Below, in pieces: positions 1 through 37,992 of a DNA stretch of 64,000 bases. Position 1 is the stretch's first letter. The number at the start of each line of letters is the position of its first letter. The notes under the pieces are model-generated. The model was not told the origin of the DNA, did no database searches, and was given only the letters and a program-made list of their open reading frames with translations. The position numbers were made by a program, and so were the translations under genes. This DNA is from Prasinococcaceae sp. CCMP 1430 (lineage: Eukaryota; Plantae; Prasinodermophyta). The stretch spans positions 94,313-158,312 of the forward strand of contig RQSC01000006.1 in the NCBI GenBank assembly GCA_013416795.1. The letters run 5' to 3'.

Positions 1-2374
1 GGGCGGCAAGGCCGGGGGCGGGCGCGCGCCTCGCTCGGGGCACGCGGGCGCCGTGGGGAGGAAGGGGAGCGCCGGGGCGAGGGCGGGCGCCTCGCCTGAC
101 AGTCCGCAGGAGAAGAGCAAGAAGCGCAAGAAGGGAGCGGCCGCCGGCACTAGCAGGGGACGGCGCGGCGAGGGCGACACAGGCAAGCGCGCGCGCAGGT
201 TTGGCCCCAAGTCGCAGCAGCACAACCGCATCGTCAAGGAGAGCTACAAGGTGCGATCAGCGCGAGCGAACGCCCCGCCATCGCGTTGACAGGGCGCGAG
301 CGCAGTGGCCACCAGCTGGCCGCTTGTCACACGCGCGCGCGTGCGCCAACTGTGCACTCCCAGTCGCTGTGGGGGCGCGCCGACACGCGCCGACCAACGC
401 CTGCGCGCGCCGCCGCGCGGGCCCTGCCGCTGCGGCCGCCACTGACGTCTCGCACGCGCCGAACAGATGGACGCCAGCGGCCATCCCATCATGCCCGACG
501 ACGGGTACTCGTGGCGGAAGTACGGCCAAAAGTACGTGAAGGAGTCGCCTCACCCGCGCACGTACTACAAGTGCACCCACAAAGGCTGCAACGTCCGAAA
601 GCAGGTGGAGGTCGATGCGATTGAGGGCACGGTGACGACGCAGTACGAGGGGACGCACACCCACGACCCGCCCACGGACCGCATCATCAAGCGGACGCCG
701 CTGCCGCTGGCGGAAGGCATTATTGCTGCGCCGCCGGCCATGAGAGACTCAGCAGCGCAGGCGGTCCCGACCGTGCGCGACGCCTCTGCGACGGCCGCTG
801 CAGGCGAGAGGCGGCAGCGGCGGGCGGCGGGCGGCGGGGCACGCAACCCGCGGGGCGCGGGCCTCCAGCACGCCGCCCAGCCCGAGACGCGCAACGGATG
901 GACGCAGACCATGGAAAGCCTCGACGGCGGCAGCAGGGTGGTGGTACGGAGGGCGTCCAGCATCTTGCCTTCCACACTCGCGGGCGCGGTGCGCGGGGGC
1001 GCGACGGGCGTGCCCATCGCGCCGCCAGATGCCAACACCGCGGCCGGGGCCACAAGAGCGGGGGCTGCCCGGTATCCAAGCGGCGGCGATTTGCGCAACG
1101 CGTCTCCATCGGTGAGCCCCCATTTCGTCTCATCGGTCGGCAGTCTGCAATACCACCTCCAGCAGCAGCAGACTCCGCAGCAGCAGCAGGAGCACATGCT
1201 GCAGCTGCAGCCCTCGCCGCTCTCAGCACTCGACACCTCGTGGGCGCGCACGACGGGCGGCGTGGTCTCCCCGTCGCCCGGTGCGAGGAGGCCCATCCCC
1301 CGCCGGATCAGCAGCGAGGGCGCGTCCAAGCAGGACGGGGAGCGCCCGCCCGCGCCCGCGAGCGCGCCTCCGACGCAGCCTCCCACGACGACGACAATGG
1401 TGGCCCGCCGCAAACCGTCGGTGCCGACCTCGCGGTCCCAGGGCCAGAGCTTCGCCGAGCGCGCGCGTGCGCGCCTGCCCGGTCTGCCTGTGCAGGTCGA
1501 CGTGAACTCGATGCCATCGGCGCACACCCACCCGTCGGCGATGGCCCAGATCATGAGCCCGGCCACCGAGGCGCTCATGATGGCGCAAATCTCGCCCGTT
1601 GGGGGGCTGGACAGGCTCGTGTTCTCTCCGCACTGGGGCAGCCAGCAGCAGCCCGCGTCCTACGGCGGTCAGCCGCCGCCGCTACCAGTGCCGCCGCGAG
1701 TGTCGCAGCTGCCGGTGTCGCAGCAGCATCCGCAGCATCCGCAGCAGCCACTACAGCCGCAGCAGCCACTGCTGCCGCAGCAGCCACTGGAGCCGCAGCA
1801 GCCACTGGAGCCGCAGCAGCCGCAGCAGCCGCAGCAGCCGCAGCCGCAGCAGCAGGCAAACCACCAGCAGCACCACCACCACCGCCAGTCTCAGTACCAA
1901 CAGCAGTACCACCACCATCCGACGACCCAGGAGGGCCACCATTTGGCCGGGACTCCGAGCATGGTCGCTGGCTTACACACGCCGTCCCTCTTCTACCAGC
2001 AGCAGGTCGCGGGCGCCCCAAGCATCGTTGACTCGCTCGGCCCGGGCGCGCTCGAGCTGCCGCCTCAGCAGTGGCACCCGAGCAAGGTGGCGGCAGTGAT
2101 GGCCCACGCGACGGGCGCGGGAGGCGGGGACGTCACAGAGGTGACCGTCGACCGCGTCCCCTCGTTCATGGCGACCATGGGCGTCTTCTCCGCTGCGCAC
2201 CAGCCCTCGCAGCAGCCGCCCGCAGGAGCGGACGCCACGCCGCCTACCTCAGGCAAGGACCTCACGGTGGGCCAGTGGGCGAAGGTTGTGAGCAACAGGA
2301 TGGGCCTCCAGCAGCTGCCTATGCAGGCACCGCCGCCGAGCGACACCGAGGGGCCTGCGGCGGCGCTGCTCTAG
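1..2374 (+). CDS. WRKY: WRKY transcription factor (5'-partial; intron 251-466), long Q/P-rich C-terminus
   Basis: [11 protein letters not shown] plus C-x4-C...HTH zinc finger; phase-0 GT..AG intron with ACTGAC branch site joins the upstream basic exon to the 467-2374 ORF. Confidence 0.93.
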
Positions 2375-15552: not shown

Positions 15553-15724
15553 CTGCCGCCGNNNNNNNNNNNNNNNNNNNNNNNNNNNNNNNNNNNNNNN
15601 NNNNNNNNNNNNNNNNNNNNNNNNNNNNNNCGCGGTGCCGCTGCGGGCCGCCGACGTCGAGCCGCTGCGGCCCGACCCGCGCGGGCTGCGCGGCGTGCCC
15701 GACGGCGAGCTCGACTCGCGCGAG

Positions 15725-18176: not shown

Positions 18177-21100
18177 TCAGAGCTCGATGCGAAACTGCTG
18201 CATCTCGATCTCCATGGAGCCGCCGCCGTCCTCGAGGTCGTAGGCGTCGTCGATGGCGCCGGCGGAGCCCAGGACGCTCTCGCTGAACAGCTGCGCCATG
18301 GTCGCCCCGAGGTCGTCGTAGGTGCTGTCCTCGCGTGCGTCCGCGGTGTCGGCGCCGCGCATGCGCGCGCTGAGGTATTCCGCGCCTGCGCCCATGAAGG
18401 CACCGCGCGCGCTGCAGTGCTTGAGAAGCGCGCGCCAGTTTGAGTCCTCCGCGAGCGCCTGCGGGTGCCCACACACTACGAGCAGCGCCTTGGCCCGCGT
18501 GATGGCCACGTTGAATCTGTTGGGGGAGCTGAATGCATGGATCGCCGCGGCGTTGCTGCCGCTCCCTCCGCCAGCGGCGCGCAGCGACGCTGGTCTCGTG
18601 AGCACCGTACTTATCAGCAGCACCCGAGCTTCTTGGCCCTGATAGTCATCAATCGTTCCGACGCGCACGGCGCCGAGCCCTCTCTGGCGAAGACAGTGGC
18701 GAATCGCATGTACTTGCGATCGGAAGAGCGCCACCACGCCCAGCTCGCTCGCGCTGGTGTCTACGTGCTCAGCGGTGACGAGGCTCTCGACGAGATCGGT
18801 GACGACGGTAGCCTCAAAGGGATTGAACCACGAGTGGTCGCCCTGACGCACCTGTCGGCCATGCACGCCATACATGACCAGTGGAGGGACCTCGCTGCTT
18901 GCCGACGGAGGTATCCACGCAGGGGGGCGGACGCTGTCTGGATCTGCTGCCGAAATGAGCGCATCTTCATAGAACAGGCGTGATGGCAGCGAAAGGAGTG
19001 CCTGCGATGAGCGGTACGAGCGCAGGAGCGCAGCGACTTTCAGGCCGCCGAGCCCTTTCGTGCGCATCAGGGCGCCGAGCAGTGACGATGTCATGGCCTT
19101 TCGCACGCTTCTCACGCTCGTGTGCACGAGTGGCCCCAACTGGAGAGGGTCCCCGACGAGAAGGACCCGCGGCTCTTCGACTTCAAGGCCGAGGCCGAAC
19201 GGTGGCGGTGGGCTCACGAGGATGGCCGTCACCAACGGACAGAGTGTCTCCGCCACCAGCGCCTGCCCCGCCTCGTCAACGATGACGTGCGACACGCGCC
19301 GGTCCGCCTGATTGCCACCGTATCCATCGCTGGTGGCGCTCCCCGCCCGAGCCCTCGCGAGGAGCGTCGCGCCACCACAGGTGGCGACAATAATCGAGCA
19401 CTCGGAGGACAGGGCGGCCTGAACGGCCGCGTGCTCATCGAAGGCTCGGCCAATGCCGCCATGGCCACCGTCAGACTGCGAAAAATAGCAGAACGGGATG
19501 ACGTCGGCCTTCACGCTCTCGGCAAGCCTGGTGGCAGCATTGATTCTCACGAGGTAGCCCTTGTCGAGAGTGACACCCGGCGCACACGACGGCGCCGTCG
19601 CAAGCTGCGACGCCAGCAGGTCTGCGGCGAAGTTGGTGGGGGCGCACACGAGCACCTTGGCATCTGGGGTGTGCAGCAAGACTTGCCGCACAACCTCGAC
19701 CACTGTTGAGGACTTGCCGGTCCCAGGGGGGCCAAAGATGCACATTGGTGGCGCTGCGTCGTTGCAGGCATATCCGCCGTGGTCCGTGCCCCCGACGCGT
19801 GCGCTGAGGTCTTCGGGCAGTCTCAACTCCCCACTGTCGGCTGGGTGGGCGTCGTCAAAGTCTTCCCAGAAGACGTACTTCTCCACAGCCGCGAGCTGCT
19901 CGCGGTTGAGCAGCTCATTGAAGGGTTCGCATCGCCGCACCGACGTTCCAGGATGCGATTCCATGGCGCCATTCGAACCCGGCACCTGATCGCCCGCTCT
20001 GCGGCGCGAGGACTCCGCGAGGCTGGCGGCCTCGGCAAGTGCACGGGCACATGCGCCGTCACCATCGTTCTGCCCGTCGGTTGAGCCCTCCTGGCACAGT
20101 GATTCAAGCAGCGGCGCGATCCATCGTGGCGGTTGGGGCAGCGCCTGCGCTTGCTCGAGCGTCCACCCGAGAGCGGCAAATAGGTGATTGTCGACGGCGA
20201 AGGACACATGCACTCGAAGCGGTGGCACCTTCTCTTGATGCTCGGCACCTCCTTTTCCCGCTGTGGGGCTGTACAGTGCCTCCAAGAAGCCTGCGAGTTG
20301 CCCGGCTCGTCTCGAATCAATGTGTTGAGTGCGGGTGACCAGCTCGGCGACCTCGTCAGGGAGCTTGAGCATCACTGTCCCCTTTTGCACTTGCACGACG
20401 GTCATGCCGAGTTCGAAGCTCTCGGGGGCATACGCTGGGCGCACGCGCACGACGTCCCCGGCAGATAGCGCTGGCCTGCCTTCCTCGACTCCAGGCGCTT
20501 CAAACTGCACGAGGCGTGCCCTCGAGCCCGCTGTTTGCCCCCCTCCGCTCGAGGCACAAAGCTGCACGTGGAACATGTCGCATTTGCGCAGGTTTTCGGC
20601 GATGGCATTGCGCTCGACCGCCGAGAGCGAAGCGAGCGCACGGAGCGCCACGCGCGCCTCCGACGCCTCGTCTGACTCATCTATTCGCGTTTTGCTCGCG
20701 AGCGCCCACTCGCGAATCGTCCTTGGGAGTGCCTCGCCGGTCAACAGTGTTTCCAAGTCGATACTGCTGCCGAGCGCGCGCTCAGCCCGCGCCTGGCGTC
20801 CCTCGTCTGCGAAGGCCACGCGCGCGGGGCGATCGAACAACGTGCGGAGGTTGCCGGGCACAAACTGCGGCGCGTCTTCCGACAGCCTGACAAACTCGGT
20901 GGTGTTCGACACGAGCGCGAGCGTCACGGGGCACGCCAGGGGTTCCAGCGGGCCGAAACCTCCGTACTGCTCCTGCAGTGCCGCTGGGGCAATGTGCGGG
21001 AGCCGCACGCCGACGCCCACCACGAAGCGGCTCGCGTGCAACCCGCACTTGGCCGACGGGCGCAACTCGATCGTGAAGTTGTACGAGGCCCCTGCTGGGA

Positions 21101-21830
21101 GTACCACCGCGGGGACGTCCTCGTCCGCCCTCGCGATCGCTTGGGCATCCGCCGCGAGGGCGATGCCCTCGTCGTCGAGCACCCTCACGCTGCCCGCGCC
21201 TTCGAGCTGGGGCACGAGTTTTGGAAGTGCGATGACGACTTCCACACTGCCTGAGTTGACGAGGCAGAGGCTGCGGTAGAGCGCGCGCGAGAGCATTGCC
21301 TCCTCGGGGCGCGGCGCGTGTCGCAGCCCGAAGTCGGCGCACGACGGCGGTTGCATGTGCACGCCGAGCTTTGGAGCGTCGAGCAATTGGGCGCCGGCGC
21401 GCGCAGCGTCGAGGTCGGAGGAGCCGCAGCGCGCGAGCGCCTCGCGCAGCGTCCTCTCGTACGCCGCCTGCATGGCGCGCGGCACGCGCATCGTGTACGG
21501 CCTCGACGGCAACTTGCTAGCACGCGCGCGGCCCGACGCGGGCGCGGCGGCATCCCCAGCCCCGTGGAGCGGGTAGACAGACAGCGGCACGGCTGGCGTG
21601 AACGGCGCGTGGGCCACGACATGGGGGGGTGGGGGCAGCATGCTCGCGTGTGCGGCGAACATCTCGCCCATGAACATCCCCGGACTGGCGAGGGCGGGCG
21701 CGCCGTTGGGCCACGGCGCGTGCATCGGCGTGGGCGCATGCGGCGGCGCGTGCGCATACGGCGCTGCGGCAGGCGGGGCGCTCAGAGCGCGCCGCTCGCG
21801 CTCCGTGCCCATTCGCGCCGAGCTGCTCAT
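18177..21830 (-). CDS. SDE3: UPF1-like SF1B RNA helicase, MOV10/SDE3/Armitage type
   Basis: GPPGTGKS, VCAPTNFAAD, DEAGQ, GDPLQLGP, YRS, GTIDDYQGQE, RFNVAITRAK; MOV10-like beta-barrel motif PGVEEGRPALSAGD. Confidence 0.8.
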   Translation of the reverse strand: MSSSARMGTERERRALSAPPAAAPYAHAPPHAPTPMHAPWPNGAPALASPGMFMGEMFAAHASMLPPPPHVVAHAPFTPAVPLSVYPLHGAGDAAAPASGRARASKLPSRPYTMRVPRAMQAAYERTLREALARCGSSDLDAARAGAQLLDAPKLGVHMQPPSCADFGLRHAPRPEEAMLSRALYRSLCLVNSGSVEVVIALPKLVPQLEGAGSVRVLDDEGIALAADAQAIARADEDVPAVVLPAGASYNFTIELRPSAKCGLHASRFVVGVGVRLPHIAPAALQEQYGGFGPLEPLACPVTLALVSNTTEFVRLSEDAPQFVPGNLRTLFDRPARVAFADEGRQARAERALGSSIDLETLLTGEALPRTIREWALASKTRIDESDEASEARVALRALASLSAVERNAIAENLRKCDMFHVQLCASSGGGQTAGSRARLVQFEAPGVEEGRPALSAGDVVRVRPAYAPESFELGMTVVQVQKGTVMLKLPDEVAELVTRTQHIDSRRAGQLAGFLEALYSPTAGKGGAEHQEKVPPLRVHVSFAVDNHLFAALGWTLEQAQALPQPPRWIAPLLESLCQEGSTDGQNDGDGACARALAEAASLAESSRRRAGDQVPGSNGAMESHPGTSVRRCEPFNELLNREQLAAVEKYVFWEDFDDAHPADSGELRLPEDLSARVGGTDHGGYACNDAAPPMCIFGPPGTGKSSTVVEVVRQVLLHTPDAKVLVCAPTNFAADLLASQLATAPSCAPGVTLDKGYLVRINAATRLAESVKADVIPFCYFSQSDGGHGGIGRAFDEHAAVQAALSSECSIIVATCGGATLLARARAGSATSDGYGGNQADRRVSHVIVDEAGQALVAETLCPLVTAILVSPPPPFGLGLEVEEPRVLLVGDPLQLGPLVHTSVRSVRKAMTSSLLGALMRTKGLGGLKVAALLRSYRSSQALLSLPSRLFYEDALISAADPDSVRPPAWIPPSASSEVPPLVMYGVHGRQVRQGDHSWFNPFEATVVTDLVESLVTAEHVDTSASELGVVALFRSQVHAIRHCLRQRGLGAVRVGTIDDYQGQEARVLLISTVLTRPASLRAAGGGSGSNAAAIHAFSSPNRFNVAITRAKALLVVCGHPQALAEDSNWRALLKHCSARGAFMGAGAEYLSARMRGADTADAREDSTYDDLGATMAQLFSESVLGSAGAIDDAYDLEDGGGSMEIEMQQFRIEL

Positions 21831-22139
21831 CGCTCAGCCACGCGGCGCCTCCCCGGCCCTCACGCTCCCTATCGCGCCGACATCGCCCACGCACGCGGCC
21901 CGGCCGCTGACACGCCTCCCGGCGTTGGCGCGCTGCGCGCGCACCGTGTGCCCCGCCACACACTGCAGGCGCTGTATGCAGGACCGCAGGACCGCTGGAC
22001 CGCAGGACCGCAGGAGAGCCCTCAGGCCGCGAACGCTGCCAGTCTGCGCGCGAGCGGCGCGGGACGTGCTCACACCCACCAGCGCGTGCGCGCGTGCGCA
22101 CGCGCACGCGCGCCGGCCGTCGCGTGGTCTCACGCGCGT

Positions 22140-23063
22140 ATGGCTGCAGCTGCTGCTGCTGCTGCTGCGGCGGCGGCGGCAGCCGTGCCAGTGCTGTACG
22201 AGAGCGACCAGCTGCTGGTGGTCCACAAGCCCGCGGGCGTGCCGTTCCAGTGCGTGGGCGCGCGCGCAGGCGCCGTCGAGCTCGCGCGGCGCGCACACGT
22301 GCCGGGCTACCGCGCGCGCAGCGGCGGCGACGACGACAGCGATGGTGGCGGCGGCGGCGATGGGCTCCTGCTGCCGGTGCACCGGCTGGACGCGGTCACG
22401 AGCGGCGCGCTCGTACTCGCCAGGACATGCGAGGCCGCCGCTGCCGCCGCGGAGGAGTTCCGCGCGCGGCGCGTGAGCAAGTATTACGTCGCGTTGTCGG
22501 CACGCAGGCCACGGAAGAAGCAGGGCGTCGTGGCCGGCGGGATGGAGCGGGCGCGTAGGTCGCAGTGGCGCCTGACGCGCGGCGCGGGGCCGGCCGGCGC
22601 CGGCGGCGGCAACTTCGCGCGCACGCGCTTCGACAGCTGGAGCGTCGACAGCGCGCGCCATCCGCGCCTGCGGGCGTTCTGCCTGAAACCCGAGACGGGA
22701 CGAACGCACCAGCTGCGCGTCGCCATGAAGTCGCTGGGCGCGCCCATCCTGGGCGATCCGCTGTACGCCCACGCCGCCGACGCAGCGCAGGAGCGGCGGT
22801 GCTACCTGCACGCGGCGGCCGTGCGGCTACGCGTGCGAGGGGAGGCTGTCTCGGTCGTCGCGCCGCCGGCGCTCAGCCTGTGCTACGACGACCTCGAGGG
22901 CGACGAGGAGGGCGACGAGGAGTCTCCCAGTCGTACCTCGGAGTTTGCCACGGCGGAGTTCGTGGAGTGGTGGGAACGCACCTTCGAGCTGGCCCTGGCG
23001 GACGGGGGCGACCGCGAGGACTGGTTCGACGGCAGCACGCAGCTCAGCGCGCCGCCGCCGTGA
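22140..23063 (+). CDS. RluA-family RNA pseudouridine synthase
   Basis: VVHKPAG, HRLDAVTSG (catalytic Asp), TGRTHQLRV, PILGDPLY, YLHA. Confidence 0.9.
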   Translation: MAAAAAAAAAAAAAAVPVLYESDQLLVVHKPAGVPFQCVGARAGAVELARRAHVPGYRARSGGDDDSDGGGGGDGLLLPVHRLDAVTSGALVLARTCEAAAAAAEEFRARRVSKYYVALSARRPRKKQGVVAGGMERARRSQWRLTRGAGPAGAGGGNFARTRFDSWSVDSARHPRLRAFCLKPETGRTHQLRVAMKSLGAPILGDPLYAHAADAAQERRCYLHAAAVRLRVRGEAVSVVAPPALSLCYDDLEGDEEGDEESPSRTSEFATAEFVEWWERTFELALADGGDREDWFDGSTQLSAPPP

Positions 23064-23303: not shown

Positions 23304-24497
23304 TCACTCTGCTGCTCGTGCAACACGACGGATGCGTGCCACCTCATCGTGCACCGCCAGCGCCTCAGCGTCCCGCTCCAGGTGCTTGTACACGCCACCC
23401 ATTGAGTCCAATGCTTCGGCCACGTCCAAGTGGTCGTCACCCAGCGCGGCGCGACGGATGCTGAGGGCCTCCTCGTACGCCGCGAGCGCCTCGTCGTACC
23501 CCTCCAAACGGAGCGCGTACAGCCTACCCACATCCATCAATATCCCTGCCACGTCTAAGTGGTCGTCACCCAGCGCGGCACGCTCGATGCGCAGCTCCTC
23601 CTTTTTCGCCGCCAGCGCCTCGTCCCATCGACTCTCGCAGCAATGCACGTCATACATGTAGCGTATCGTCCTCGCCACGTCCCGGTGGTCGTCACCCAAG
23701 ACGGCGCGCTTAATGCGCAGCGCCTCTTCGTGCTCCGCCATCGCCTCCTCGTACCGGTGGAGGCCGACGCAAACGATACCTACGCTGTTCCTCCGCACTG
23801 CCACGCTCAGGTGGTCGTCACCAAGCGCGCCGCGAGAGATGTGCAGCGCCTTCTCGAACGCCAGCAGCGCGTCTTTCTTCCTCTCCCCTTGCATCTTCCA
23901 ATGCACGTGACCCATGTAGAAAATTGTCTGCGCCACGTCGTCGTGGTCGTCACCCTGCGCCGCGCGACGGATGCGCAGTGCCTCCTCGTACACCGCCAGA
24001 GCCTCGTCACACCGCCGCTGGAAGCGGTAGACCCGACCGATACATTCGAGCGTCCCTGCTACGCCCAGGTGGTCGTCACCCAGCGCGGCGCGACGGATGC
24101 GCAGCGATTCCTCGTACTCTGCGAGCGCCTTGTCGTACTGCTCCTGCTTGAGGTACACGTCGCCAATACTTATTAGCGTCCATGCCACGTCCAAGTGGTC
24201 GTTGCCCTGCGCGGCGCGACGGACGCGCAGGGACTCCTTGAGCGCCGCCAGCGCCTCGTCGTGCCGATTCACCTTGAGGTACGCGACACCCATGCAGTTG
24301 TCCGCCACTGCTAAGTCCAGGGGTTTGAAGTCGTCGCCCAGTACTTGCACCACACGTCGGATGCGCTGCGCCCCCTCGTACGCCGCCAGCGCGTCCTCGT
24401 ATCGCCTCTTGCAAAAGTGCGTCTTCCCTTGCTCCATGCAGTTGTCGACAGCCACTCGAAGTGCGGCCTCTGCGAGCGTCCCCGCGGCAGGCGCCAT
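23304..24497 (-). CDS. Tandem TPR protein (kinesin-light-chain/TPR_12-type approx. 42-aa repeats)
   Basis: Repeats of YDEALAAYEEALRIRRAALGDDHLDVA; TGTAA at 23284-23288 (minus strand). Confidence 0.85.
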   Translation of the reverse strand: MAPAAGTLAEAALRVAVDNCMEQGKTHFCKRRYEDALAAYEGAQRIRRVVQVLGDDFKPLDLAVADNCMGVAYLKVNRHDEALAALKESLRVRRAAQGNDHLDVAWTLISIGDVYLKQEQYDKALAEYEESLRIRRAALGDDHLGVAGTLECIGRVYRFQRRCDEALAVYEEALRIRRAAQGDDHDDVAQTIFYMGHVHWKMQGERKKDALLAFEKALHISRGALGDDHLSVAVRRNSVGIVCVGLHRYEEAMAEHEEALRIKRAVLGDDHRDVARTIRYMYDVHCCESRWDEALAAKKEELRIERAALGDDHLDVAGILMDVGRLYALRLEGYDEALAAYEEALSIRRAALGDDHLDVAEALDSMGGVYKHLERDAEALAVHDEVARIRRVARAAE

Positions 24498-24871
24498 CGA
24501 AGCCGCGCCCCGGCTGACGCCGTACCAGAAAATATCGCGCGCGCTCCCAGGCCGCACGCGCCCCAGGCGCCCCGGCGGCAGGCCCGCGCCTGTCAGCCCG
24601 GCCGCAGCTGCCTTCGCGCGGCCCGCGCCCAATGTCAAAGCCCGGGACGCGCCCTCACAGGCGCGGCAGCGGCGCGCGCGCGCGCCAGTGTGCCCCCGCG
24701 CGCCGCGTGGCGCTTCTCCGCCCCCCGGCGGTGATCCAGACGGGCAGGTGGCATCGCACGCAATGAGGCGATGCGATGCCAATGAAGGATGCATCGTGTC
24801 AAAGCCCGAGACGCGTGCTCACGGGCGCCGCAGCAGCGCAGCGTACAAGCGCGTGGCGTCGTACAGCCGAT

Positions 24872-24883
24872 CACACACACGCT

Positions 24884-24938
<55 letters not shown>

Positions 24939-24951
24939 ACACACACACACA
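24872..24951. repeat. (CA)n microsatellite
   Basis: Direct inspection. Confidence 0.95.
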
Positions 24952-25175
24952 GATGCAAGCGCGTACTTCCGTGGCGGCGTACGCGCCTGCGCCTGCGCTG
25001 GCGCTGGCGCTGGCGCTTGCGCTGGCACCCTTCCAGTCTACAGTAAGTTCCAGACGTCGCAGAGGGCCTGAGGTGAGGCGCCCTCGACGGCACCACCCGC
25101 ACCGGCGAGAGCCGGCGAGGGCCAGGCGGGCAGCTGCCAGATGGCAGGCAGCGCCACAGCAGCGCCGCGCTCTCA

Positions 25176-25178
<3 letters not shown>

Positions 25179-25232
<54 letters not shown>

Positions 25233-25239
25233 ACACACA
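25179..25239. repeat. (CA)n microsatellite
   Basis: Direct inspection. Confidence 0.95.
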
Positions 25240-25654
25240 GTTGTTCAACCTCCGGAAGAATTATTTTGCGTGCGTTTTGATGTGCACATTGGCCAGCAGT
25301 GACATTGCGGCAGCGCCGCGGTGCGCCAGCCGGGCCAGACTGGGAGGTTGACAGCGACGGCACCGCCCGGGGTTGTTCGGATGCGAAGAGACGTGTCGAT
25401 CATGCAAGTCAAAGTCAATGCCTCGTCGCGTGAGAAGTGCAAAGTGATGTGAACTCCGATGAAGGTCGCGAAGCGTGCGAAGGGCAGGGATGAGTGCGAA
25501 GTGATGGGAAAGAAGGCGGCGGTGGGAAATTGCGCGGCGCGCGCTGATCGCCGGCCGGCGCCGCTCGGCGGCGCCACACCGCGCGTGAGGGCGAGGGTAA
25601 GCCCGCTGTCCTAATTGGTGGCACCGGGCCGCGGCGGCGGCCGGCCTGGCTCGG

Positions 25655-28599
25655 ATGGGCGGGGGCGCCCGCCTGTGGTGGGTGCTGCTGCTGGGGCTGG
25701 CGCTCGTCGCGGGCGCGGGCGGGCGCATCGCAGGCGCCGCGGCGCAGGCGCCGGGCCCTCCAGTAATCACGTGCGGCGCGTGCAGCTTCACAGTGGCAGC
25801 GGACGACCCCGACGGTACGGGCGTGCTGTCCGATAGCGGGCAGGCGGGCGTGCTCCCTCGCTCCCTCTCTCGCTCCATGCCGGCGGTCGCCCCATGCTGC
25901 TGTTGCGCCGTTGCTCCCGGCGAGCGTGGCGTCTCATTTATGAGTCGCCGCTCGTGCAGCGTGACACCCGCCCCTTCTTCCCGCGCGACCCGGACCCGCT
26001 CGTTGTCGATCGGCTCCTTGCCTGCATGCGCTGCTGACTGACGTGCGCTGCGCGATTTTGCCATCCATTCGCACCGCAGGCAAGCTGCAGCGCACGGGCG
26101 GGCTGTGCGGACCTGGCTGCACGAGCCTTGATCTGCGGCCGCTCAAGCACCACCTCAAGGATGTAGGAGGTTCCCTCGCGGATCTGCCTTTCCTGGAATC
26201 GCTGTGGATCGCCATGTCCAAGAAGCTCAAGGTGCTGCCGCAGAACACGCTGCGCGCGATGAAGTCACTGACGTTCCTCGACCTGCACGCGAATGGGGTG
26301 GCGTCGCTCCACGGCGACCTTTTCAAGAACAACGGCACGGAGCTTTCCCAGCTCAAATGGCTCTCGCTGAGCGGCAACAAGCTCAAGTCGTTGCCCGAGG
26401 GTATCTTTGATGGCCTCACCAGCCTGGAGCACCTCGATCTGCCCAACAACCAGATCGAGTATTTCCACCCGCACGCCTTCGATGCTTTCGCGCCCTCCCT
26501 CAAGCACCTTCGCTTCCACAACAACAACATTGACGCGCCGCTCCCGCCCAGCCTGCTGAGCGGCCTCACGGCGCTCACCATGCTCGACATGCGCGGGAAC
26601 GGAGCAAACATGTGCTACGCCGCCGGCAGCATCCCCCCAGGGGTGCCTGTGATCGGAGGGCACGTGTGCGAGACCGTCCAAACTGTTCACGGGACGGGGA
26701 GCGGTGGGGGGAAAGGCGCCGGCCAGTCCGGTGGCGACGGCGACGACGGCGACAAGAAACCGACGTCTGGCAAGAACAAGACAGGCAAGTGGGGCAAGAA
26801 GAAGAGCAACGGCAAAGGCTGGGGCGCTGCGAAAAAGAAAGCCAGCAGCTGGTGGCAAAAGAAGATCCTGGGCAGGCGCAGGCTGCAGGGTGAGATGCAG
26901 ACTTCGGCGGACGCACCCGCGCCCGCGCCTAGGTTCGAGGACGTGGACAACCTGCCTTACGATGAGCTGGCGGACGATCCGGAGGACGCAGCCCTGCTGA
27001 AGCGCTGCATGGAAGCTTCGTCTCGAGGATGGAGTTTCATGCCGGCGGAGTGCCGCGGGGAAACCGCTGGGGCCGACGAGAGCAGCGCCGCCGCCGCCAA
27101 CCTCACGGTGACGCATAACGGCACCGAGATCTCGGTGGAGCAGGCGATCGTTGGCGGACGGGTGGTGGGCGGAAACGGCGCCGACATCTCGTGGTTTCCC
27201 TATCAGCTCAGCCTGCTGAAGGCCAACTTTCGCATATGTGGCGCGAGCCTCATCGCGCCCGACTGGGCGCTTACCGCGGCGCACTGCCTACCGGAGGCAA
27301 TGGCTGATCCCGCGGGGGCCTCGTCGCTCTACCGCGTCGTTTACGGGAGCACCGACGTCGCGTTGGGGTTGGGAGAGGGCAAGGTCGTGAGCGTGCAGGC
27401 GGTGGTGATCCATCCAGACTTCGTCGCCGACACTTTGGAGTCGGACGTCGCGCTCCTCAAGCTCCAATTCGAAGTGCCGATTGGTTCTGGCTCGGGCGCC
27501 ACGACCATTCCGCTGGCAGGTTCGGGCGAGGACGCACAGTTGGGCCAAGACGCGTATGTCAGCGGCTGGGGCACCACGCAAGAGGACTGCGACTCGTGCT
27601 CGCCCGTCAACCTTCACTACGCGGCCGTGGACATAAGGGCAGGCGCGGACGAGGCCACGTGCGTGGCGTACAGCACATCGAAGTTCAACCCGCGCACGAT
27701 GCTCTGTGCCGGGTGCGCGGACGGTTCCAAAGACGCTTGCCAAGGCGACTCCGGCGGGCCCCTGGCCGTCAACGGCGCCGGCGGGCACCCTTTGCTCGTC
27801 GGCATCGTCAGCTGGGGGATCGGGTGCGGAAGGCAGTTCTTTCCGGGCGTCTATACGCGCGTGTCGACCTTCTCACCCTGGATCCAGGAGGTCACGGCCA
27901 GCGCGGCGGTCGTGAGCAGCCGCTGCAACGAAAACCCCCAGCTAGACTTGGATTGCTTCGCGGCAGCGCCGGTGCCGTGGTCGCCGGTGAACGCCGACGA
28001 GAACCCCTGTGGCGCCGGGCTCGACCTCGGACCGCCGGGACCGCCCCCCCCTCCTGGTCCGTGCTCGACGAGCTGCGATGGCATCGGTGCCGGTCAGGAC
28101 GACATCGACACGCCGTGCTACTGTGACTCCACGTGCGTCGACTTCGACGACTGCTGCGACGACGGTGCGTCGAACACACAGCACCTGCGCTTGTCGCTCT
28201 CCGCCACCCGCACCGCATTGTTCGTGTTCCAGCGCGCGCGCTGACACACCGCCCGCATACACCGCCGCACGCGCCGTAGCGTGCCGAGAGTGCGGGAGCT
28301 GCCCGCCCCTCGAAATTCAGCTCGAGGGCTTTCCGCAGTGCGGGCTCCTCAACAACGGCGAGCTTTGCGGGCGCGAGGCCGTCTCGGGCTGCTGGTGCAC
28401 CGATGACTGCCACGAGTTCGGCACGTGCTGTTGGGACGTGTGCGATGCGTGTGGCTTCAGCTGCACGGACGCCCTCTCGTCATCGACGTCTGGGGCTGCT
28501 GACGACAGCTCCAAGGGAGGCGGCGCCGGCGGCGGGCGCTCCCTTGCCGCGGTGCTGGTCGGCCTCGCGAACGCGGCGCTGGTATTCTTTCACGTCTGA
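25655..28599 (+). CDS. Secreted or GPI-anchored multidomain protease: signal peptide, LRRs, S1 trypsin domain, two somatomedin-B-like domains (introns 25815-26079, 28165-28279)
   Basis: LWWVLLLGLALVAG signal; LxxLxLxxNxLxxLP repeats; RVVGG activation site; TAAHC, DVALL and DACQGDSGGP triad motifs; CYCDSTCVDFDDCCDD and CWCTDDCHEFGTCCWD; hydrophobic C-terminus; both introns phase 1; TGTAA at 28678. Confidence 0.88.
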
Positions 28600-29211: not shown

Positions 29212-30165
29212 NNNNNNNNNNNNNNNNNNNNNNNNNNNNNNNNNNNNNNNNNNNNNNNNNNNNNNNNNNNNNNNNNNNNNNNNNNNNNNNNNNNNNNNNN
29301 NNNNNNNNNNNNNNNNNNNNNNNNNNNNNNNNNNNNNNNNNNNNNNNNNNNNNNNNNNNNNNNNNNNNNNNNNNNNNNNNNNNNNNNNNNNNNNNNNNNN
29401 NNNNNNNNNNNNNNNNNNNNNNNNNNNNNNNNNNNNNNNNNNNNNNNNNNNNNNNNNNNNNNNNNNNNNNNNNNNNNNNNNNNNNNNNNNNNNNNNNNNN
29501 NNNNNNNNNNNNNNNNNNNNNNNNNNNNNNNNNNNNNNNNNNNNNNNNNNNNNNNNNNNNNNNNNNNNNNNNNNNNNNNNNNNNNNNNNNNNNNNNNNNN
29601 NNNNNNNNNNNNNNNNNNNNNNNNNNNNNNNNNNNNNNNNNNNNNNNNNNNNNNNNNNNNNNNNNNNNNNNNNNNNNNNNNNNNNNNNNNNNNNNNNNNN
29701 NNNNNNNNNNNNNNNNNNNNNNNNNNNNNNNNNNNNNNNNNNNNNNNNNNNNNNNNNNNNNNNNNNNNNNNNNNNNNNNNNNNNNNNNNNNNNNNNNNNN
29801 NNNNNNNNNNNNNNNNNNNNNNNNNNNNNNNNNNNNNNNNNNNNNNNNNNNNNNNNNNNNNNNNNNNNNNNNNNNNNNNNNNNNNNNNNNNNNNNNNNNN
29901 NNNNNNNNNNNNNNNNNNNNNNNNNNNNNNNNNNNNNNNNNNNNNNNNNNNNNNNNNNNNNNNNNNNNNNNNNNNNNNNNNNNNNNNNNNNNNNNNNNNN
30001 NNNNNNNNNNNNNNNNNNNNNNNNNNNNNNNNNNNNNNNNNNNNNNNNNNNNNNNNNNNNNNNNNNNNNNNNNNNNNNNNNNNNNNNNNNNNNNNNNNNN
30101 NNNNNNNNNNNNNNNNNNNNNNNNNNNNNNNNNNNNNNNNNNNNNNNNNNNNNNNNNNNNNNNNN
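29212..30165. other. Assembly gap (N run); other gaps at 15562-15630 and 50891-51322
   Basis: Runs of N. Confidence 0.99.
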
Positions 30166-31388
30166 GCCCGCGGTCGCGCCCACACACGCAACGCGCGCGC
30201 GCGCTTGCCGGCCTGCGCGCCCCTGCACCTGCGCCCCCGCGTCCACGCACCTTCGAGTGCACGGCGCGCGCCTGCGCTCGCTCGCGTGCGGCCCCGTGCC
30301 GCCCACCCCCCCCACCCACCCCATCGCCCTCCCGGCGGCGTCGACCGCCGCGCGCGGGGGAACGGGAACGGGAACGGGGGAACCGGGGTGCACAACCTGC
30401 AAATACCTTTGTTCTTCTCTTTAACCCACGGGCGCGCATCGTGTCTCATATCAAACCCAAAGGCCTCTGCATCGCCAGAACGGTTTTTTTTTTGGTTGGG
30501 GGCAATGCATCCCGACGCGAACGCAGTGCATTTTGATGGGAGCGCAAGGCGGTTTGATGGGGGTGCGAATGCAATGCGTTTTGATACTGACGCGGGCGGC
30601 GGGCAAAAGATCTTTTCAGCCGCGTCGACGCCTTTTTTGACACGTGTCAGTTTTGGTGGTGTTGGCGGGGTGGGGCGGCGGGCGCGCGAGAGCGTGATGC
30701 GTGGCGCGCGCGAGCGTGTGCGTTGGGAGGGTGCGCCCCGCGCCGCGCGCGCGCGCTCTGGGCGCACGCGCGCGCGCGCTGCCGCTCCCCACGACTCAAA
30801 AACGCATGCGTTCTGACCTATCACTCCGGCCTTTGATTTTGAACTCGACCCGAACCGCACCGCACGCGGCGCGCCCGCCTCCACGCCCAACGAACCCGGT
30901 GTGCCGACGAAAGCTCGCCGGAACCCTGTCTAGGAGGCACAAAGCACGCACGGTCAGACCCGGACCATGCGCGATAAGACCCGGTTCAAGGCGGGCTCTT
31001 CCGGGCCACTTTTTGTTTTTTTTGTTTTGGCTTTTTTTTTGAACGCGGCGCCAGCAGCAGTGCCGTTGTTGCGCACGCGCACTTCCCCCGAAATAACTCC
31101 GTTTTTACCCAAGGATTCGAGGCGATGTGTCTATAACTACCCACATCGCGCTTAAATACGGATACGAAAAATTCGCGTCCCAATCCAGAAACTCCGGCCG
31201 AGCCGCTGGTGGTGGGCGGAGCGCGGCGGCCGCCGCGGGGGAGCCTTTTTTTTTTTTTGCGCGCGCGGTGTCGGGTTCGGGAATGCGTTTCGGTGTGCGG
31301 GCGCCAACCTTTTTTTTTTTTTGCGGCGACGGGGGCGCGCGAGGTCAAAGCGCACCCTCCCCCACACAGACCGCCCCCGCCGCTCACC

Positions 31389-33362
31389 ATGGTGTGGTGC
31401 ACCACCTGCAATGCCGACATGGCGGCGGAGGTGGACGACACGCGCGGTTTCACGTGCTGCACCGGGTGCGGACGCGTGCTGGACGAGACCGCGTTCTCCA
31501 CCGACCCGACGTTCTCCAAGGCCGCCAACGGCGCGTCGACCGTCGACGGCAACTTCGTGCCGGACGGCGGCGGCGGCGGCGGCATGGGCAAGATGCGCGG
31601 CGCGCGCATCTTCGGCTACCAGGTCGACTCGCACGAGAAGACCATTGCGAAGGGCAAGTACGAGATTTCACAGGTCAGCGAGCGCCTGGGCATACGCCCC
31701 CGCGAGGAGATGGTGTCGGCCGCGCACAGGCTCTACAAGCTCGCGGTGCAGCGCAACTTCACCCGCGGCAGGCGCACCGCGCAGGTCGCCAGCGCGTGCC
31801 TCTACATCGTCTGCAGGCAGGAGGGGAGGCCCTACATGCTCATCGACTTCTCGGATGCGCTGCAGACCAACGTGTACGTGCTGGGCTCGGTCTTCCTGCA
31901 GCTGTGCCGGCTGCTCCGCCTCGAGCAGCACCCCATCATGCAGCGCCCCGTCGACCCGTCCCTCTTCATCCACCGCTTCGCCGACAAGCTCGACCTCGGG
32001 CGCAAGTCCAACGCCGTGGCCACCACCGCCCTGCGCCTGGTCGCCTCTATGAAGCGTGACTGGATGCAGACCGGCCGGCGGCCCAGCGGCATCTGCGGCG
32101 CAGCGCTCTTCATCGCGGCGCACATCCACGGCCTCTCGCGTGGCAAGAAGGAGGTGGTGCAGGTCGTGCACGTGTGCGAGGCGACGCTCCAGAAGCGCCT
32201 CACCGAGTTTCAGCTGACGGGGTCGAGCGACCTCACCGTCGAGGAGTTTGATCAGCGCGCGAACGACGTTGGGACGGCCATTTTCAGGCCGCCGACCGGC
32301 GCAAAGGACGGCGAGATTCGCGAGCTCACATGCGAGCACCGCAAGCAGCCCGGCATCGCCCACTTCGCGCACGGCATGTGCCTGGCCTGCTACCAGCAGT
32401 TCGACAAGGTGTCTGGCGGCCTGCACGGCGGCTTCGATCCCCCGGCGTTCCGTGCCGCGCAGCTCAAGGAGGCCGCCAAGCGGGAGGCGCGCATGAAGAT
32501 GGCGCTTGAGGCGCAGGACCTCCAGGCGACGAAGAGCATAGCGACCGAGCTCGAGTCTGCGCTCCAGGGCGATGCCACGCTGCGCAGGGTAGCGCAGCGC
32601 GCGCTGCCGGAGGGGCAGCGACCCCCCTTGCCCGATCGACAGAATGGCGCAGGGACTGCTGGCGAGGGCGCGGGCGCCTCAGCCGCCGAGCTCATGCCGC
32701 CCCCGGCGACGAAGGGCTCGGGCGTGGGTGACGTCCAAGTGGCTGCGGCCGGCGGCGGCGCGGGGCCGGCGACGCAACTCCCTCTCGATGACAGTGACCT
32801 AGAGTTCGATGATGACTACGAGGAGAAGGAGCACCCGAACGAGGAGACACTGTCTGACGTCGATGACGACGAAATCGACATGTATATTCACACGGAACAG
32901 GAGGTGAAGCTCAAAGAGAAAGTGTGGCGCAAGCTCAACGCTGAGTACTTGAAAGAGCAGGACCAGAAGGCGGCACAAGCAGCAGCGCTGGAGAAGGCCA
33001 ACGCAAAGAAGATTGCCGAAGGGGGCAGGGTTCCAAAAGTTGGGGCGGAGCGCAAGGGAAAGAACAGGATTGGGCAGGTGGGCGTCACCCCGATGGCGCC
33101 ATCGGCTCCCCCGAAGAGCGCTGGCGAGGCGGCCGCGCAGATGCTGGCCAAGAAGCGCATCAGCACGAAAATTAACTACGACGCGCTCGACAGACTCTTC
33201 AGTGACGTGGGCGCCGGCAAGAAGGGCAAGAGCGGCTCCAAGGGCGGTTCTGGCGGCGTCAAGAAGGGCCACGCCGGCAAGTCTAAGGGGAAGGGAAAGG
33301 CGAGCGGAAGGCTGGCGAGCGTCTCGGCCCCTTTCCGCCTCGGCAGCGTTCGTACGGGATGA
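31389..33362 (+). CDS. BRF1: TFIIIB subunit BRF1 (TFIIB-related factor)
   Basis: N-terminal Zn ribbon CTTC...CTGCG, cyclin folds, DWMQTGRRPSGICGAAL, C-terminal TBP-binding region KKRISTKINYD; TGTAA at 33412. Confidence 0.95.
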   Translation: MVWCTTCNADMAAEVDDTRGFTCCTGCGRVLDETAFSTDPTFSKAANGASTVDGNFVPDGGGGGGMGKMRGARIFGYQVDSHEKTIAKGKYEISQVSERLGIRPREEMVSAAHRLYKLAVQRNFTRGRRTAQVASACLYIVCRQEGRPYMLIDFSDALQTNVYVLGSVFLQLCRLLRLEQHPIMQRPVDPSLFIHRFADKLDLGRKSNAVATTALRLVASMKRDWMQTGRRPSGICGAALFIAAHIHGLSRGKKEVVQVVHVCEATLQKRLTEFQLTGSSDLTVEEFDQRANDVGTAIFRPPTGAKDGEIRELTCEHRKQPGIAHFAHGMCLACYQQFDKVSGGLHGGFDPPAFRAAQLKEAAKREARMKMALEAQDLQATKSIATELESALQGDATLRRVAQRALPEGQRPPLPDRQNGAGTAGEGAGASAAELMPPPATKGSGVGDVQVAAAGGGAGPATQLPLDDSDLEFDDDYEEKEHPNEETLSDVDDDEIDMYIHTEQEVKLKEKVWRKLNAEYLKEQDQKAAQAAALEKANAKKIAEGGRVPKVGAERKGKNRIGQVGVTPMAPSAPPKSAGEAAAQMLAKKRISTKINYDALDRLFSDVGAGKKGKSGSKGGSGGVKKGHAGKSKGKGKASGRLASVSAPFRLGSVRTG

Positions 33363-33446: not shown

Positions 33447-36400
33447 TCAGCGCGCGCGTTCCCTCCTCGCATGGGCATCGTGCCTGCGCATGATGTTGGC
33501 CTCGTGCTCGCGCAGCACGCGGCCCTGCTCACGCTCGATTTCCTCGGCGCGCAAGGCGGCTGCATATGCGTGGTACTTGCCGCCATCCGCCTCGTCGTAT
33601 TTGACATCGGTGTGGCCGTGGGCGAAGTCGTGCGCGTATGCATCGCTGTCGACAGAGCGCTGCAAGTGCGCCGGCCGGTCGCGCGCCCTTCCTGTCCCTC
33701 CTGCGTTCCTGCCACCCAAGTTGAGCGGTGGCAGTTCCGTTCGCCATGCAGACTCGCTCGCCCAGAGGCCTTCATCAAGCGCATGGTATTGCCCGTACTG
33801 ATTCGCGCCTAGCTGCTCGTACGGCGCTTCGTCGTCGAGCGCCGCGTGAGCGCCGCGCACGTCGTAGCCTCCACTGCGGGCACGGCTTTGCGGGGCGTAG
33901 CCGGTGCCATCAGCGGCGTAGGCCCCCCCTCCTTGGGATATCCCACGCCACTTGTGCTGCGCTGCATAGCTGCTCACGCCGAGGCCCGCGGAGGACCCGC
34001 CGCCTCGACGTGCCCAGCCGGCGGGCGCCTCGGGAGCGCTCGCATACGCATACCCGTACCCACTGCGATGTCTGGTGTGCCCGGCTCGCCGTTGCGGTCG
34101 GAACGCGGCGCTGGCTTGCACACTTGCCCGTGGCTGCGCGTACGCGTAGCTTGACGACGGGGCGCTGGCACGCGTGTCAAACCTGGGCATGGGCTTGGCT
34201 TTGAAGGGCTGTTTGGCACGCTCGCGCTGCTCGTGCTCCCTCCTCGTCCTCTGCTGTGCGCGCTCGATGCGTACGCGCATGACCTTGTTCTCATGCACAC
34301 CGCTTGACGACCTGGCCAGGGCGCGCATGTCAAAGCTGGGCATGGGCTTGGCTTTGAAGGGCTGCTTGGCACGCTCGCGCTGCTCGTGCTCCCTCCTCGT
34401 CCTGTGCTGTGCGCGCTCGATGCGTACGCGCGTGACCTTGTTCCCATGTACACCGACCACACTACCGCCACCGACAGCTCGATTTTCCTTGCCAGATGCG
34501 GGGGGATCGGCTGGGGGCCGGCGCCGGCGAGGCTCCTCGAAGGAGCGTCCATATTTGTCTTTGCCCTTTGGAGCAGGTCCCCAGGCGTCCCTTGCCGACT
34601 GAGCTGCGCCCTTCACGCCTCCCCTCCTTTCCTTCGCCTGCTTTCCTGGCACTCTCCTCGCTCCATTCACCCGCTCGGGTGGCACTTGCTTGGTGTTGCT
34701 GCCCCGCCGCGTGGGTTTGCCGCCCTGCTGGCGGAGCCTGGCCTTGCGATCCCGTTGCTTTCTCGGCGCGTCCTCATCAGTGCTGCCGTCGGCCCAAGCG
34801 CGGGCATACTCAGGGTTCACTTGGAGTATGTCGGCGTGACTGTCGCCATCAGTAAATCCCGAAGTTTCACTCCCGTCCTTCTCGGCATTTGAGTCGCTGT
34901 CGATGTCGTCGTCGCGGTACTTCATGCGCTGTGGAGACTTGCCGTGGCCGCGACGCCCCCTCGGACCCTGCTCCCTGCCGAGGGGCGACTGCGCGTAGAG
35001 AATGCCGGGGCTTGAGAAACGCCGGGCACTTGCGCGTGGCGCCCCCGCATAGGCCGCACCGGGCGAATCTGGCGGCAGAGGTGAGTGCTCTTCGGGCGTC
35101 TCGGAGAACGGCCCGCCCCTCGCTCTGTCCACGCCCCCCCTGGGCGTGCCAAGGCCGAGTCCACCCTGCCCGAGCGCAACACTCGAGCACGGCGAGCTGC
35201 CCATGCCAGATTCGGGCCTTGCGACCAACTCTGCTAGACGCTGTTGCATCTCGCGCTGACGGCGCTCGAACGCTGCCATCTGGGAACCACCATCGGTGCC
35301 GTTGTCGGGCGTGTGGGCGCCATCGTGGCCGCGACTGCTGCCTCCCTCGTCCACGCCATCTTCATGATCGATCACCTGATGTAGAACGGGGGAGCCTATC
35401 GGCCCCACTTCATCACTGCCACTATCGTGCTGGCCGGCAGACGCCGCGCGCGCTGCCTCCAATGCATCGACTGGGGTGCGCCAAGCTGCGTCACTGTCGC
35501 CGACGTCAACATCGATGGTGAGTCCTAGTGCCAGACCACGCGCGTGCGCACCCTGTCGCTCCCTCTCACCCGGTGCGGCGCCTGGCGGCGGTGAGCGCAG
35601 CCTGGATCGTGACGTCCGATGCACCCGCGGGCTGCCGACGCTGCCGACGCCATCCTGGACGCCAGCCTCATCGCTATCGTCAAGCTGCCGTGGTGGCGGT
35701 GGTGGCGAGCGCAGCTTCGACCTGGACCCATCACTTTTGCCCGCACTGGAGTACGCATCGAACGACACGCGCCTTGCTCCACCCTCGACCATTTCGAAAG
35801 ATTCCCTCCGCGACCCGGGCCGCGGGCTCGTCGCTCCCCGAGTGGTGTCACTCACCTCCGACCTTCCCAGCGTCTGGACCGCATTCGGCGGCGGCGACGA
35901 GTGCGACTGGGAGGTTTCATGCCCCAGCGGCCCGCCCTGGGCATGCGGGGCGGGGTTCTGTGGCTGCCGCGCGTCGCTCGATGGGGTCGGCGCCATGCCA
36001 AAGGCCGCTGCGAGCATCGTCGCAAAGTCCTCCATCTGGGCTGCCGCCTCATCGCCGTGGCCCAGGTAGTCCACAGGCTTCGAGGGGGAGGGCGGAGCCT
36101 CCTGGTTTAGCTGCAGCTCAGGATCCCGCTTGCTTTCGCTCGCGTAGCCGCTCCCAGCACGCGGTGGAGAGCGTAAACTCGCCGGGGCCGCCTCAGCTTG
36201 CGCGACCTCCTCGGCCACGCCACCTCGCTCGGTTTTGGCGCGTTCGGCGAGCCAGCCACGCGTTCGCCGCTGGATGTACCGAGCGGCGGCGTCCTCGCTG
36301 CGCATGCGCGCCTGGACGAGCGTGACGTTCCGCTCCTCATCCACGTGCGCGACCCTGGCGCGCTCCTGCGGCGAGCGCTCAGCCTTTTGGATCTCTCTCG

Positions 36401-37487: not shown

Positions 37488-37992
37488 CGGGCGAGCGGAC
37501 GCGAGCGCTTCCGAGCGCGCGCGCGCGCGCTGCTCTGCGCGCGCGCTCTGCCGTGCCCTGCCCCCCCAGCGGCCGGCCTCGCCTTCCCACGCATCCGCAT
37601 GCGCGCGCACACGGTGCGCGCGCGGGGAACTGCGTAACCACCGCACCAAAATCCATAGCGCCGATTCTATACATACATCAACATAGCGTACAAATCCCAC
37701 AATAGTTACGGATTGCTCTTCTGAAATTGTTGGCATCGGAGCCGCGTGACGTTGGTTGGGTCCCCGCGGCCCTGGCGTCAGCGAAGCAGCGCCTCCCTCG
37801 CGTTCGGTGTGACGCGAGCCACATAAAAAAGCAGGCGATTGCGTTTTTTCTTTTTTCTTTTTCATTTCTTTTCTTCGGGGGAAATTCGAACGGGCGCCGC
37901 GCGAGACGAGTTCGAGGCGCACCGCGCGGCCAAGGAGGAGGAAATGGGCTCCGGCGGCCGGCAGCGACGCGCGGCGCGCTCCGCGGGACGCG

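Follow-up and report, generated by a model that had tools for sequence, protein, structure and literature searches.

What does a trypsin-type protease gain from leucine-rich repeats (LRRs) placed in front of it, and is such a protein really made by an early-branching green alga? The question is raised by a 64,000-nucleotide (nt) stretch of contig RQSC01000006.1 from Prasinococcaceae sp. CCMP 1430 (the window, to which all coordinates refer), in which a three-exon gene on the forward strand at 25655–28599 predicts a protein with a signal peptide, LRRs, an S1A protease domain, two cysteine-rich modules and a hydrophobic tail. Modular chymotrypsin-fold S1A proteases are the mainstay of animal extracellular cascades; to our knowledge, S1A enzymes with accessory modules are all but missing from land plants, in which the S1 family is represented by Deg-type enzymes. 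The answer we favour, with a little more than even confidence, is that the gene is native to the nuclear genome of the marine green picoalga Prasinoderma coloniale, is of the expressed type and specifies a mosaic serine protease made as a zymogen for the cell surface, in which the LRR is a targeting or partner-binding module. The protein is a new domain variant within the class of mosaic S1A surface zymogens, and on this reading a green alga that branched off early assembles mosaic surface zymogens of the animal kind out of its own set of parts.

Intron borders are GT..AG, exon phases are consistent and a codon is split after its first base at both junctions. No N falls within 25655–28599, the closest runs of N lying at 15562–15630 and 29212–30165. 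Borders, phases and N positions agree in bearing out the cleanly spliced, N-free three-exon gene proposed in a preliminary description of this DNA. The parts of the gene, all on the forward strand, are as follows.

25655..25814, forward: exon 1, with the start codon, the signal peptide (about 25655–25741) and, from 25772, the first two Cys of the LRR N-cap
25815..26079, forward: intron 1, 265 nt, GT..AG, within the LRR N-cap, placed from the published model and the need for a signal peptide
26080..28164, forward: exon 2, a single unbroken exon of 2085 nt with the LRRs, linker, pro-segment, protease, stalk and most of somatomedin B (SMB)-like module 1
26121..26669, forward: LRR module, 6–7 repeats of the 24-residue 'typical' type, with a C-cap Cys pair at 26613–26615 and 26667–26669
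26691..26885, forward: basic linker, Gly/Lys/Trp-rich, net charge +14, ending in RRRL at 26874–26885
26886..27161, forward: acidic pro-segment (net charge −12) carrying the Cys pair LKRC...AEC and two N-glycosylation sequons; the P1 Arg is at 27159–27161
27162..27905, forward: S1A trypsin-fold domain (Pfam Trypsin), with the new N terminus VVGG
27906..28055, forward: post-protease extension and Pro stalk, with the Cys pair RC...LDC, APVPWSP and NPC; GPPGPPPPPGP at 28029–28061
28056..28164 and 28280–28314, forward: SMB-like module 1, Pfam Somatomedin_B 17.1 bits, E 0.0068, below cut-off
28165..28279, forward: intron 2, 115 nt, GT..AG, within SMB-like module 1
28280..28599, forward: exon 3, with the end of SMB-like module 1 (to 28314), module 2 (28330–28473), a Ser/Gly spacer (28474–28539), the hydrophobic tail (28540–28596) and the stop codon

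Exons were searched one by one, and whole-protein tests used the published model PRCOL_00005111-RA. Exon 2 matches Pfam Trypsin (PF00089) at E 2.7e-48, with 165 bits against a cut-off of 20.6, over profile positions 2–220 of 220. The closest match to the protease in the Protein Data Bank (PDB) is crayfish trypsin (2f91; 6e-41), followed by TMPRSS6, kallikrein, TMPRSS2, matriptase and prostasin (3.9e-34). Catalytic and pocket residues were assigned by alignment to crayfish trypsin and TMPRSS6 and then located on the DNA: the motifs TAAHC, SDVAL and GDSGGP align with both enzymes, the catalytic codons are those of His57 (27282–27284), Asp102 (27444–27446) and Ser195 (27750–27752), and Gly193 and Asp194 are present. 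The trypsin-type S1 pocket is complete, with Asp189 (27732–27734), Gly216 and Gly226, and KDACQGDSGGP, SWGIGC and PGVYT align to crayfish trypsin. Disulfides 42–58, 168–182 and 191–220 are present as well. The activation site reads GGR/VVGG, with the cut between 27161 and 27162, and the trypsin N terminus IVGG aligns to VVGG. Alignments and DNA positions therefore uphold the RVVGG activation site, the full His/Asp/Ser triad and the S1 Asp (in DACQGDSGGP) that the preliminary description had read. We also considered a pseudo-protease and rejected it, the triad and oxyanion residues being intact.

The part upstream of the protease is as clear in its LRRs as in its charge pattern. Searched alone, the LRR part matches LRR_8 at E 1.1e-21 (76.8 bits) and LRR_4 at E 3.3e-19 (68.9 bits), the cut-off being 27 for both, and exon 2 alone matches LRR_8 at E 1.8e-19. 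The score thus lies above threshold, with at least six LxxLxLxxN repeats and seven repeat units readable. The linker that follows, read as disordered, has 18 Gly, 15 Lys, 3 Arg and 4 Trp in 65 residues. All of the elements described earlier for this half (a signal peptide, about six LRRs, a K/W-rich linker, RRRL and an acidic pro-segment) are present, the LRRs numbering 6–7 and being Cys-capped.

Hydropathy places the only hydrophobic segments of the 854-amino-acid model, which has 40 Cys and four N-glycosylation sequons, at residues 1–30 and 833–854. At the C-terminal end a Ser/Gly/Ala-rich stretch leads into 19 hydrophobic residues and then the stop codon; both the Pro-rich spacer (28029–28061) and the Ser/Gly spacer with hydrophobic tail (28474–28596) of the preliminary description are there. 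The combination of a signal peptide and such a C-terminal signal makes a glycosylphosphatidylinositol (GPI)-type anchor probable on heuristic grounds. Between stalk and tail, each of the two SMB-like modules has 10 Cys with the core spacing C-x-C-x3-C-x5-CC. All three modules tested (two here and one from a homologue) match Somatomedin_B and no other Pfam family, at E 0.02–0.04 and below the gathering score, and a profile of the modules run against the PDB gives the SMB domain of vitronectin first (E 0.03), with ENPP1, ENPP3 and ENDOU also listed. The likeness to Somatomedin B in vitronectin, ENPP1/3 and ENDOU lies in the Cys spacing C-x3-C...C-x-C-x3-C-x5-CC; those domains have eight Cys, whereas the algal modules have ten, with an added C-x2-C-x2/3-C end.

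Domains, activation site and terminal hydrophobic segments agree with the surface-anchored S1A zymogen of trypsin specificity that had been proposed, the anchor being a predicted and probable one. We accordingly describe the product as a predicted S1A zymogen of trypsin specificity, secreted and probably surface-anchored.

What is new here is the description, the gene itself being already annotated as the published P. coloniale model PRCOL_00005111-RA. It has stayed undescribed, the genome paper being silent on such domains: trypsin, protease, leucine-rich, somatomedin and GPI all go unmentioned in it (PMC7455551). The same paper reports transcriptome support for 6,996 of 7,139 P. coloniale gene models (PMC7455551). 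PRCOL_00005111-RA (P0316, 879 amino acids) belongs to the 90% cluster of the gene and has the same two splice junctions as the window model, including the exon 1 donor; its residues 79–773 are 100% identical to exon 2. Both it and a Tara ocean scaffold (L001) begin 25 codons further upstream than the 854-residue window model, the upstream in-frame ATG being present in L001 and absent from the window assembly. Just 5′ of the start codon, 39 nt of the window (25586–25624) replace about 205 GC-rich nt of L001 (366–570), a difference that reflects either local collapse in the assembly or strain variation and that shifts the annotated N terminus by 25 residues. Exon 1 itself shows zero differences from L001 over 160 nt.

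Junction 2 finds comparative evidence in the homologue mentioned above, which reads CCED-A-CRECNSC uninterrupted where the gene joins CCDD, the split Ala codon and CRECGSC; this continuous frame confirms the predicted junction. All 14 listed environmental members of the gene's own cluster are unspliced genomic open reading frames (ORFs), and they therefore give no junction evidence.

This homologue also bears on what the LRR is for. Marine contigs from Tara and other sources, which form one cluster (P0175, P0336 and loci L002–L012), encode a homologous protein of an uncultured marine relative, 60–66% identical over the pro-segment and protease. Homology begins at the pro-segment and continues through the protease, the stalk, both Cys modules and the hydrophobic end. 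The activation P1 Arg (the site is SAR/IIAG in the homologue), the pro-segment Cys pair, the triad, Asp189 and three extra protease Cys are conserved in both proteins, which further share NPQLDLDC, PPGPPPPPGP and two 10-Cys SMB-like modules. The LRR and the basic linker are absent from the homologue, and its 3.5 kb of upstream DNA contain no LRR and instead an unrelated RBR ligase gene. One member of the cluster (P0336) is partly spliced and cDNA-like; because it starts with a signal peptide, the shorter form has one of its own, and about 70 residues, Pro/Ala-rich and acidic, separate it from the shared pro-segment. Among the matches listed by a word search, no P. coloniale paralogue of 280–892 amino acids was closer.

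Since the homologue lacks both LRR and linker and no closer P. coloniale paralogue appears among those matches, the two parts together appear to have been gained or lost in one lineage, ahead of an older unit of pro-segment, protease, stalk, two SMB-like modules and tail. RRRL coincides precisely with the point at which the added module gives way to sequence that the homologue shares. That the homologue keeps protease, stalk, SMB-like modules and tail argues that the LRR would not be needed by the protease. The natural pair, one with and one without an LRR, is a ready comparison for what the LRR adds to the protease.

Two further features of the comparison deserve mention. The stretch from the last 22 protease residues through SMB-like module 1 (PRCOL_00005111-RA 669–790, L006 1458–1829) is 68% identical, against 60% for the pro-segment and protease, and includes the invariant runs NPQLDLDC, APVPWSP, PPGPPPPPGPC and LEIQLE; this higher conservation suggests that the stalk may have a conserved binding partner. 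No intron position is shared: the introns of the homologue follow the signal/acidic exon and RQFFPGV and interrupt the protease and SMB-like module 2, which suggests complete intron turnover between the two related picoalgae. The neighbours of the homologue (the RBR ligase and an MFS transporter) were not found in the 64-kb window, and two scans of JGI metagenome contigs, one with a pro-segment and protease alignment and one with a stalk and SMB alignment, yielded no relative.

Variation in wild populations separates the modules in a different way. Ocean metagenomes contain the gene locus, with its introns, at 98.6% identity (L001). Compared with that scaffold, the LRR has 5 synonymous and 2 nonsynonymous differences, the protease 4 and 0, and the linker 2 and 7. 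Across 15 wild variants, 1.5% of sites vary in the LRR and 1.2% in the protease, with 7.6% in the pro-segment and 14.1% in the linker, and none of the 15 has a stop or frameshift between LRR and protease. These counts indicate that the LRR and the protease are under purifying selection in wild populations and that the linker is not; by the same measure the linker evolves fast.

How unusual is the architecture? Our exhaustive representative search returned the best 150 of 72,994 matches, mostly giant LRR or poly-trypsin proteins. Among 195 proteins (these 150 and those of a first word search), LRR and trypsin occurred together only in the gene's own cluster, and a later word search placed an LRR family beside Trypsin in none of the matches listed. 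The nearest ESM Atlas cluster by language-model features (0.95, 0.93) is an arthropod 'Peptidase S1 domain-containing protein' with 50 members of about 637 amino acids, Trypsin in 100% and LRR_8 in 96%. Its likeness to the algal protein is that LRR_8/LRR_4 and Trypsin stand in one chain; it shows no SMB family among its (at most three) listed Pfam families and is known from the family table alone, so that it is a lead, not a demonstrated relative. The ESM Atlas also lists a large cluster that joins LRRs with the unrelated Trypsin_2 family. The union of LRR and S1A is thus rare but not unique in life, and its combination with SMB-like modules and a GPI-type end was found only here among the matches listed. 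In the literature we found nothing specific on LRR–trypsin architectures or on S1A in green algae. The impression that the architecture is unfamiliar from green plants stands to that extent: the literature gave no algal characterisation of it, nor any sign that it is common in algae.

The descent of the protease domain is less sharply defined. The best-named S1 matches are animal enzymes at 33–38% identity, and the most similar non-algal protein among the matches listed is bacterial, at 42%. In a quick tree of 53 S1 domains, the two algal sequences pair with full support on a long stem whose sister is not resolved; the pair groups weakly (Shimodaira–Hasegawa-like approximate likelihood ratio test, SH-aLRT, 90) with two environmental sequences. 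The bacterial contig that encodes the 42% match (L013, 4105–8268) carries it as one of three tandem trypsin-family genes, which adjoin genes of the non-ribosomal peptide synthetase type.

From these parts a working scheme can be drawn. The protein would enter the secretory pathway, and its C-terminal stalk, SMB-like modules and anchor would hold it on the outside of the plasma membrane or on the wall. It would be an inactive zymogen until cut after the activation Arg, and its own Arg/Lys-preferring pocket suggests that the cut could be made by the protein itself or by a like enzyme. The active enzyme would cleave extracellular proteins after Arg or Lys, possible substrates being proteins of the wall or matrix and secreted precursors. 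In this scheme the LRR would most likely serve the pro-region in targeting or in binding a partner; it would stay in place until activation or until the linker is cut, and catalysis would not require it. The enzyme is a candidate to remodel the wall or matrix, or to process precursors at basic sites, in an alga about whose cell surface very little is known.

Known surface proteases resemble the predicted protein in part. Prostasin (PRSS8) and testisin (PRSS21) are likewise Arg-activated trypsin-fold zymogens with an Asp189 pocket and a C-terminal GPI-type hydrophobic signal, and testisin-like proteins were among the database matches; they have no LRR, SMB modules or Pro stalk, however, keep a pro-peptide disulfide that is lacking here and are about 35% identical. 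Matriptase, TMPRSS2 and TMPRSS6 (type II transmembrane serine proteases) share the layout of a surface mosaic S1A zymogen, with non-catalytic modules N-terminal to an Arg followed by (I/V)VGG. Those enzymes have an N-terminal signal anchor, a stem of SEA, LDLa, CUB or SRCR domains and a Cys122 tether, whereas the algal protein has a C-terminal anchor, an LRR and a non-Cys residue at 122.

Several observations weigh against a surface zymogen that keeps its LRR and is anchored through SMB-like modules. Cys122, through which animal mosaic proteases hold their pro-region on the catalytic chain, is absent from the protease in the alignment, where CLP of TMPRSS6 corresponds to PLA; Cys136 and Cys201 are likewise absent in the alignment to TMPRSS6 and crayfish trypsin. 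Because there is no Cys122 tether, the linker is Lys-rich and an RRRL site is present, the LRR might be released, which counts against its attachment after activation. Eight non-canonical Cys were left unpaired in our analysis. The signal-peptide and GPI calls come from hydropathy and motif inspection, not from dedicated predictors. For the SMB region, an AlphaFold2 single-sequence model is too poor to be used (predicted local distance difference test score, pLDDT, 41), and matches to Pfam Somatomedin_B (PF01033) reach 12.1–17.1 bits against a threshold of 23.1 (E 0.007–0.25). The two SMB-like Cys clusters of the preliminary description thus survive as a pattern, the 10-Cys arrangement and core spacing being real, whereas the family score falls short of the Pfam threshold; we regard the modules as divergent and SMB-like, their membership in Somatomedin B lying below threshold though consistent with what is seen.

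The same missing tether is part of the case for the alternative that survives best, which we nevertheless regard as doubtful: that the protein is a precursor split in the secretory pathway, by a subtilase- or kexin-type enzyme at RRRL or by a trypsin-like one in the linker, into a soluble LRR protein and a surface zymogen. Plant subtilases process pro-proteins at RKLL, RRLL and RRKL motifs (bioRxiv 10.1101/2022.07.28.501549), and RRRL resembles these. The motif sits exactly where the added LRR module meets the shared part, and the linker in which it lies is fast-evolving and rich in cleavable residues, with its 15 Lys and 3 Arg; a convertase common to RRRL-type basic motifs, or the gene's own protease, could make the cut. 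A four-residue motif can, however, arise by chance in a basic linker, and two unrelated products fused in one exon would need a reason to persist. Purifying selection on the LRR in cis with the protease fits either a split precursor or a single surface zymogen.

We find it less easy to credit that the LRR is a ligand-gated sensor, although the preliminary description had proposed one; we think this unlikely. The LRR would bind a microbial, mating or wall ligand and thereby trigger autoactivation of the zymogen, by analogy with factor C or ModSP. In horseshoe-crab factor C, Drosophila ModSP and the MASPs, an S1A zymogen that autoactivates is joined in cis to recognition modules; these are Sushi, LDLa, CUB, EGF and lectin domains, and the ligands and downstream cascades are known. 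The algal protein is like them in having a recognition-type module in cis, here an LRR, N-terminal to an Arg site that could be autoactivated (the P1 Arg matches the protein's own Asp189 pocket), and differs in the type of that module. Good conservation of the LRR in wild variants and the arthropod cluster that also joins LRR_8 with Trypsin speak for gating by a ligand. Against it, a long flexible linker and the acidic pro-segment separate the LRR from the cleavage site, no Cys122 tether holds the two together, and the homologue has the same layout without the LRR, so that coupling is not obligatory. In its strongest form the proposal would put an animal-style pattern-sensing protease, a surface LRR in cis with an autoactivating trypsin zymogen, in the earliest-diverging green-plant phylum, which strikes us as distinctly improbable. 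Were it true, ligand binding would lead directly to extracellular proteolysis, a receptor logic new to Viridiplantae; we know of no such logic there, where LRR ectodomains signal through kinases.

Nor does a merger of two neighbouring genes, one for an LRR protein and one for a protease, in a GC-rich genome that gives long chance frames, account well for the data, and we consider an annotation artefact of this kind very improbable. Chance ORFs of more than 300 amino acids are indeed common on both strands of the window, and the linker at which a false join would fall is of low complexity and poorly conserved. The LRR and protease nevertheless lie in one exon and one frame, without an indel or stop in the 15 wild variants, and PRCOL_00005111-RA joins both parts. 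A protease started from an internal Met would, moreover, have no signal peptide despite its many disulfide Cys.

Foreign DNA, whether contaminating or recently transferred from an animal or bacterium, finds some encouragement in the animal and bacterial identities given above but next to no credence from us, given spliceosomal introns, a guanine–cytosine (GC) content like that of the neighbours, flanking green-lineage genes, the same locus in ocean metagenomes and the long-stemmed algal clade without a resolved sister. Contamination was rejected on the native genomic context.

We return to a native gene for a surface zymogen, whose nativeness follows from a 100% match of a neighbouring BRF1 gene, a WRKY gene in the window, the spliceosomal introns and the GC content. 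The ORF of the gene for BRF1, a subunit of TFIIIB (31209–33362), is 100% identical to EukProt PRCOL_00005646-RA, and its further matches are all green plants or algae. The window has a GC content of 69.1% and the gene the same 69% as its neighbours; the P. coloniale genome has 69.8% (PMC7455551). BRF1 match, WRKY gene and GC content together identify the window as P. coloniale DNA. Other genes recognised in the window are these.

467..2374: WRKY factor gene
18177..21830, reverse: helicase ORF with AAA_11/AAA_12 domains
21318..23063: RNA pseudouridine synthase (Pfam PseudoU_synth_2)
23304..24794, reverse: TPR_12 protein

An ORF of 1585 amino acids on the reverse strand (33447–38204) matches no Pfam family at E 1e-5. 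The gap of 954 N at 29212–30165 has PRCOL_00005111 on one side and PRCOL_00005646 on the other; either gene identifiers do not follow position, or this scaffold brings together regions that lie far apart in the published assembly. Long (CA)n/(GT)n microsatellites occupy about 24880–25250, between the TPR and protease genes.

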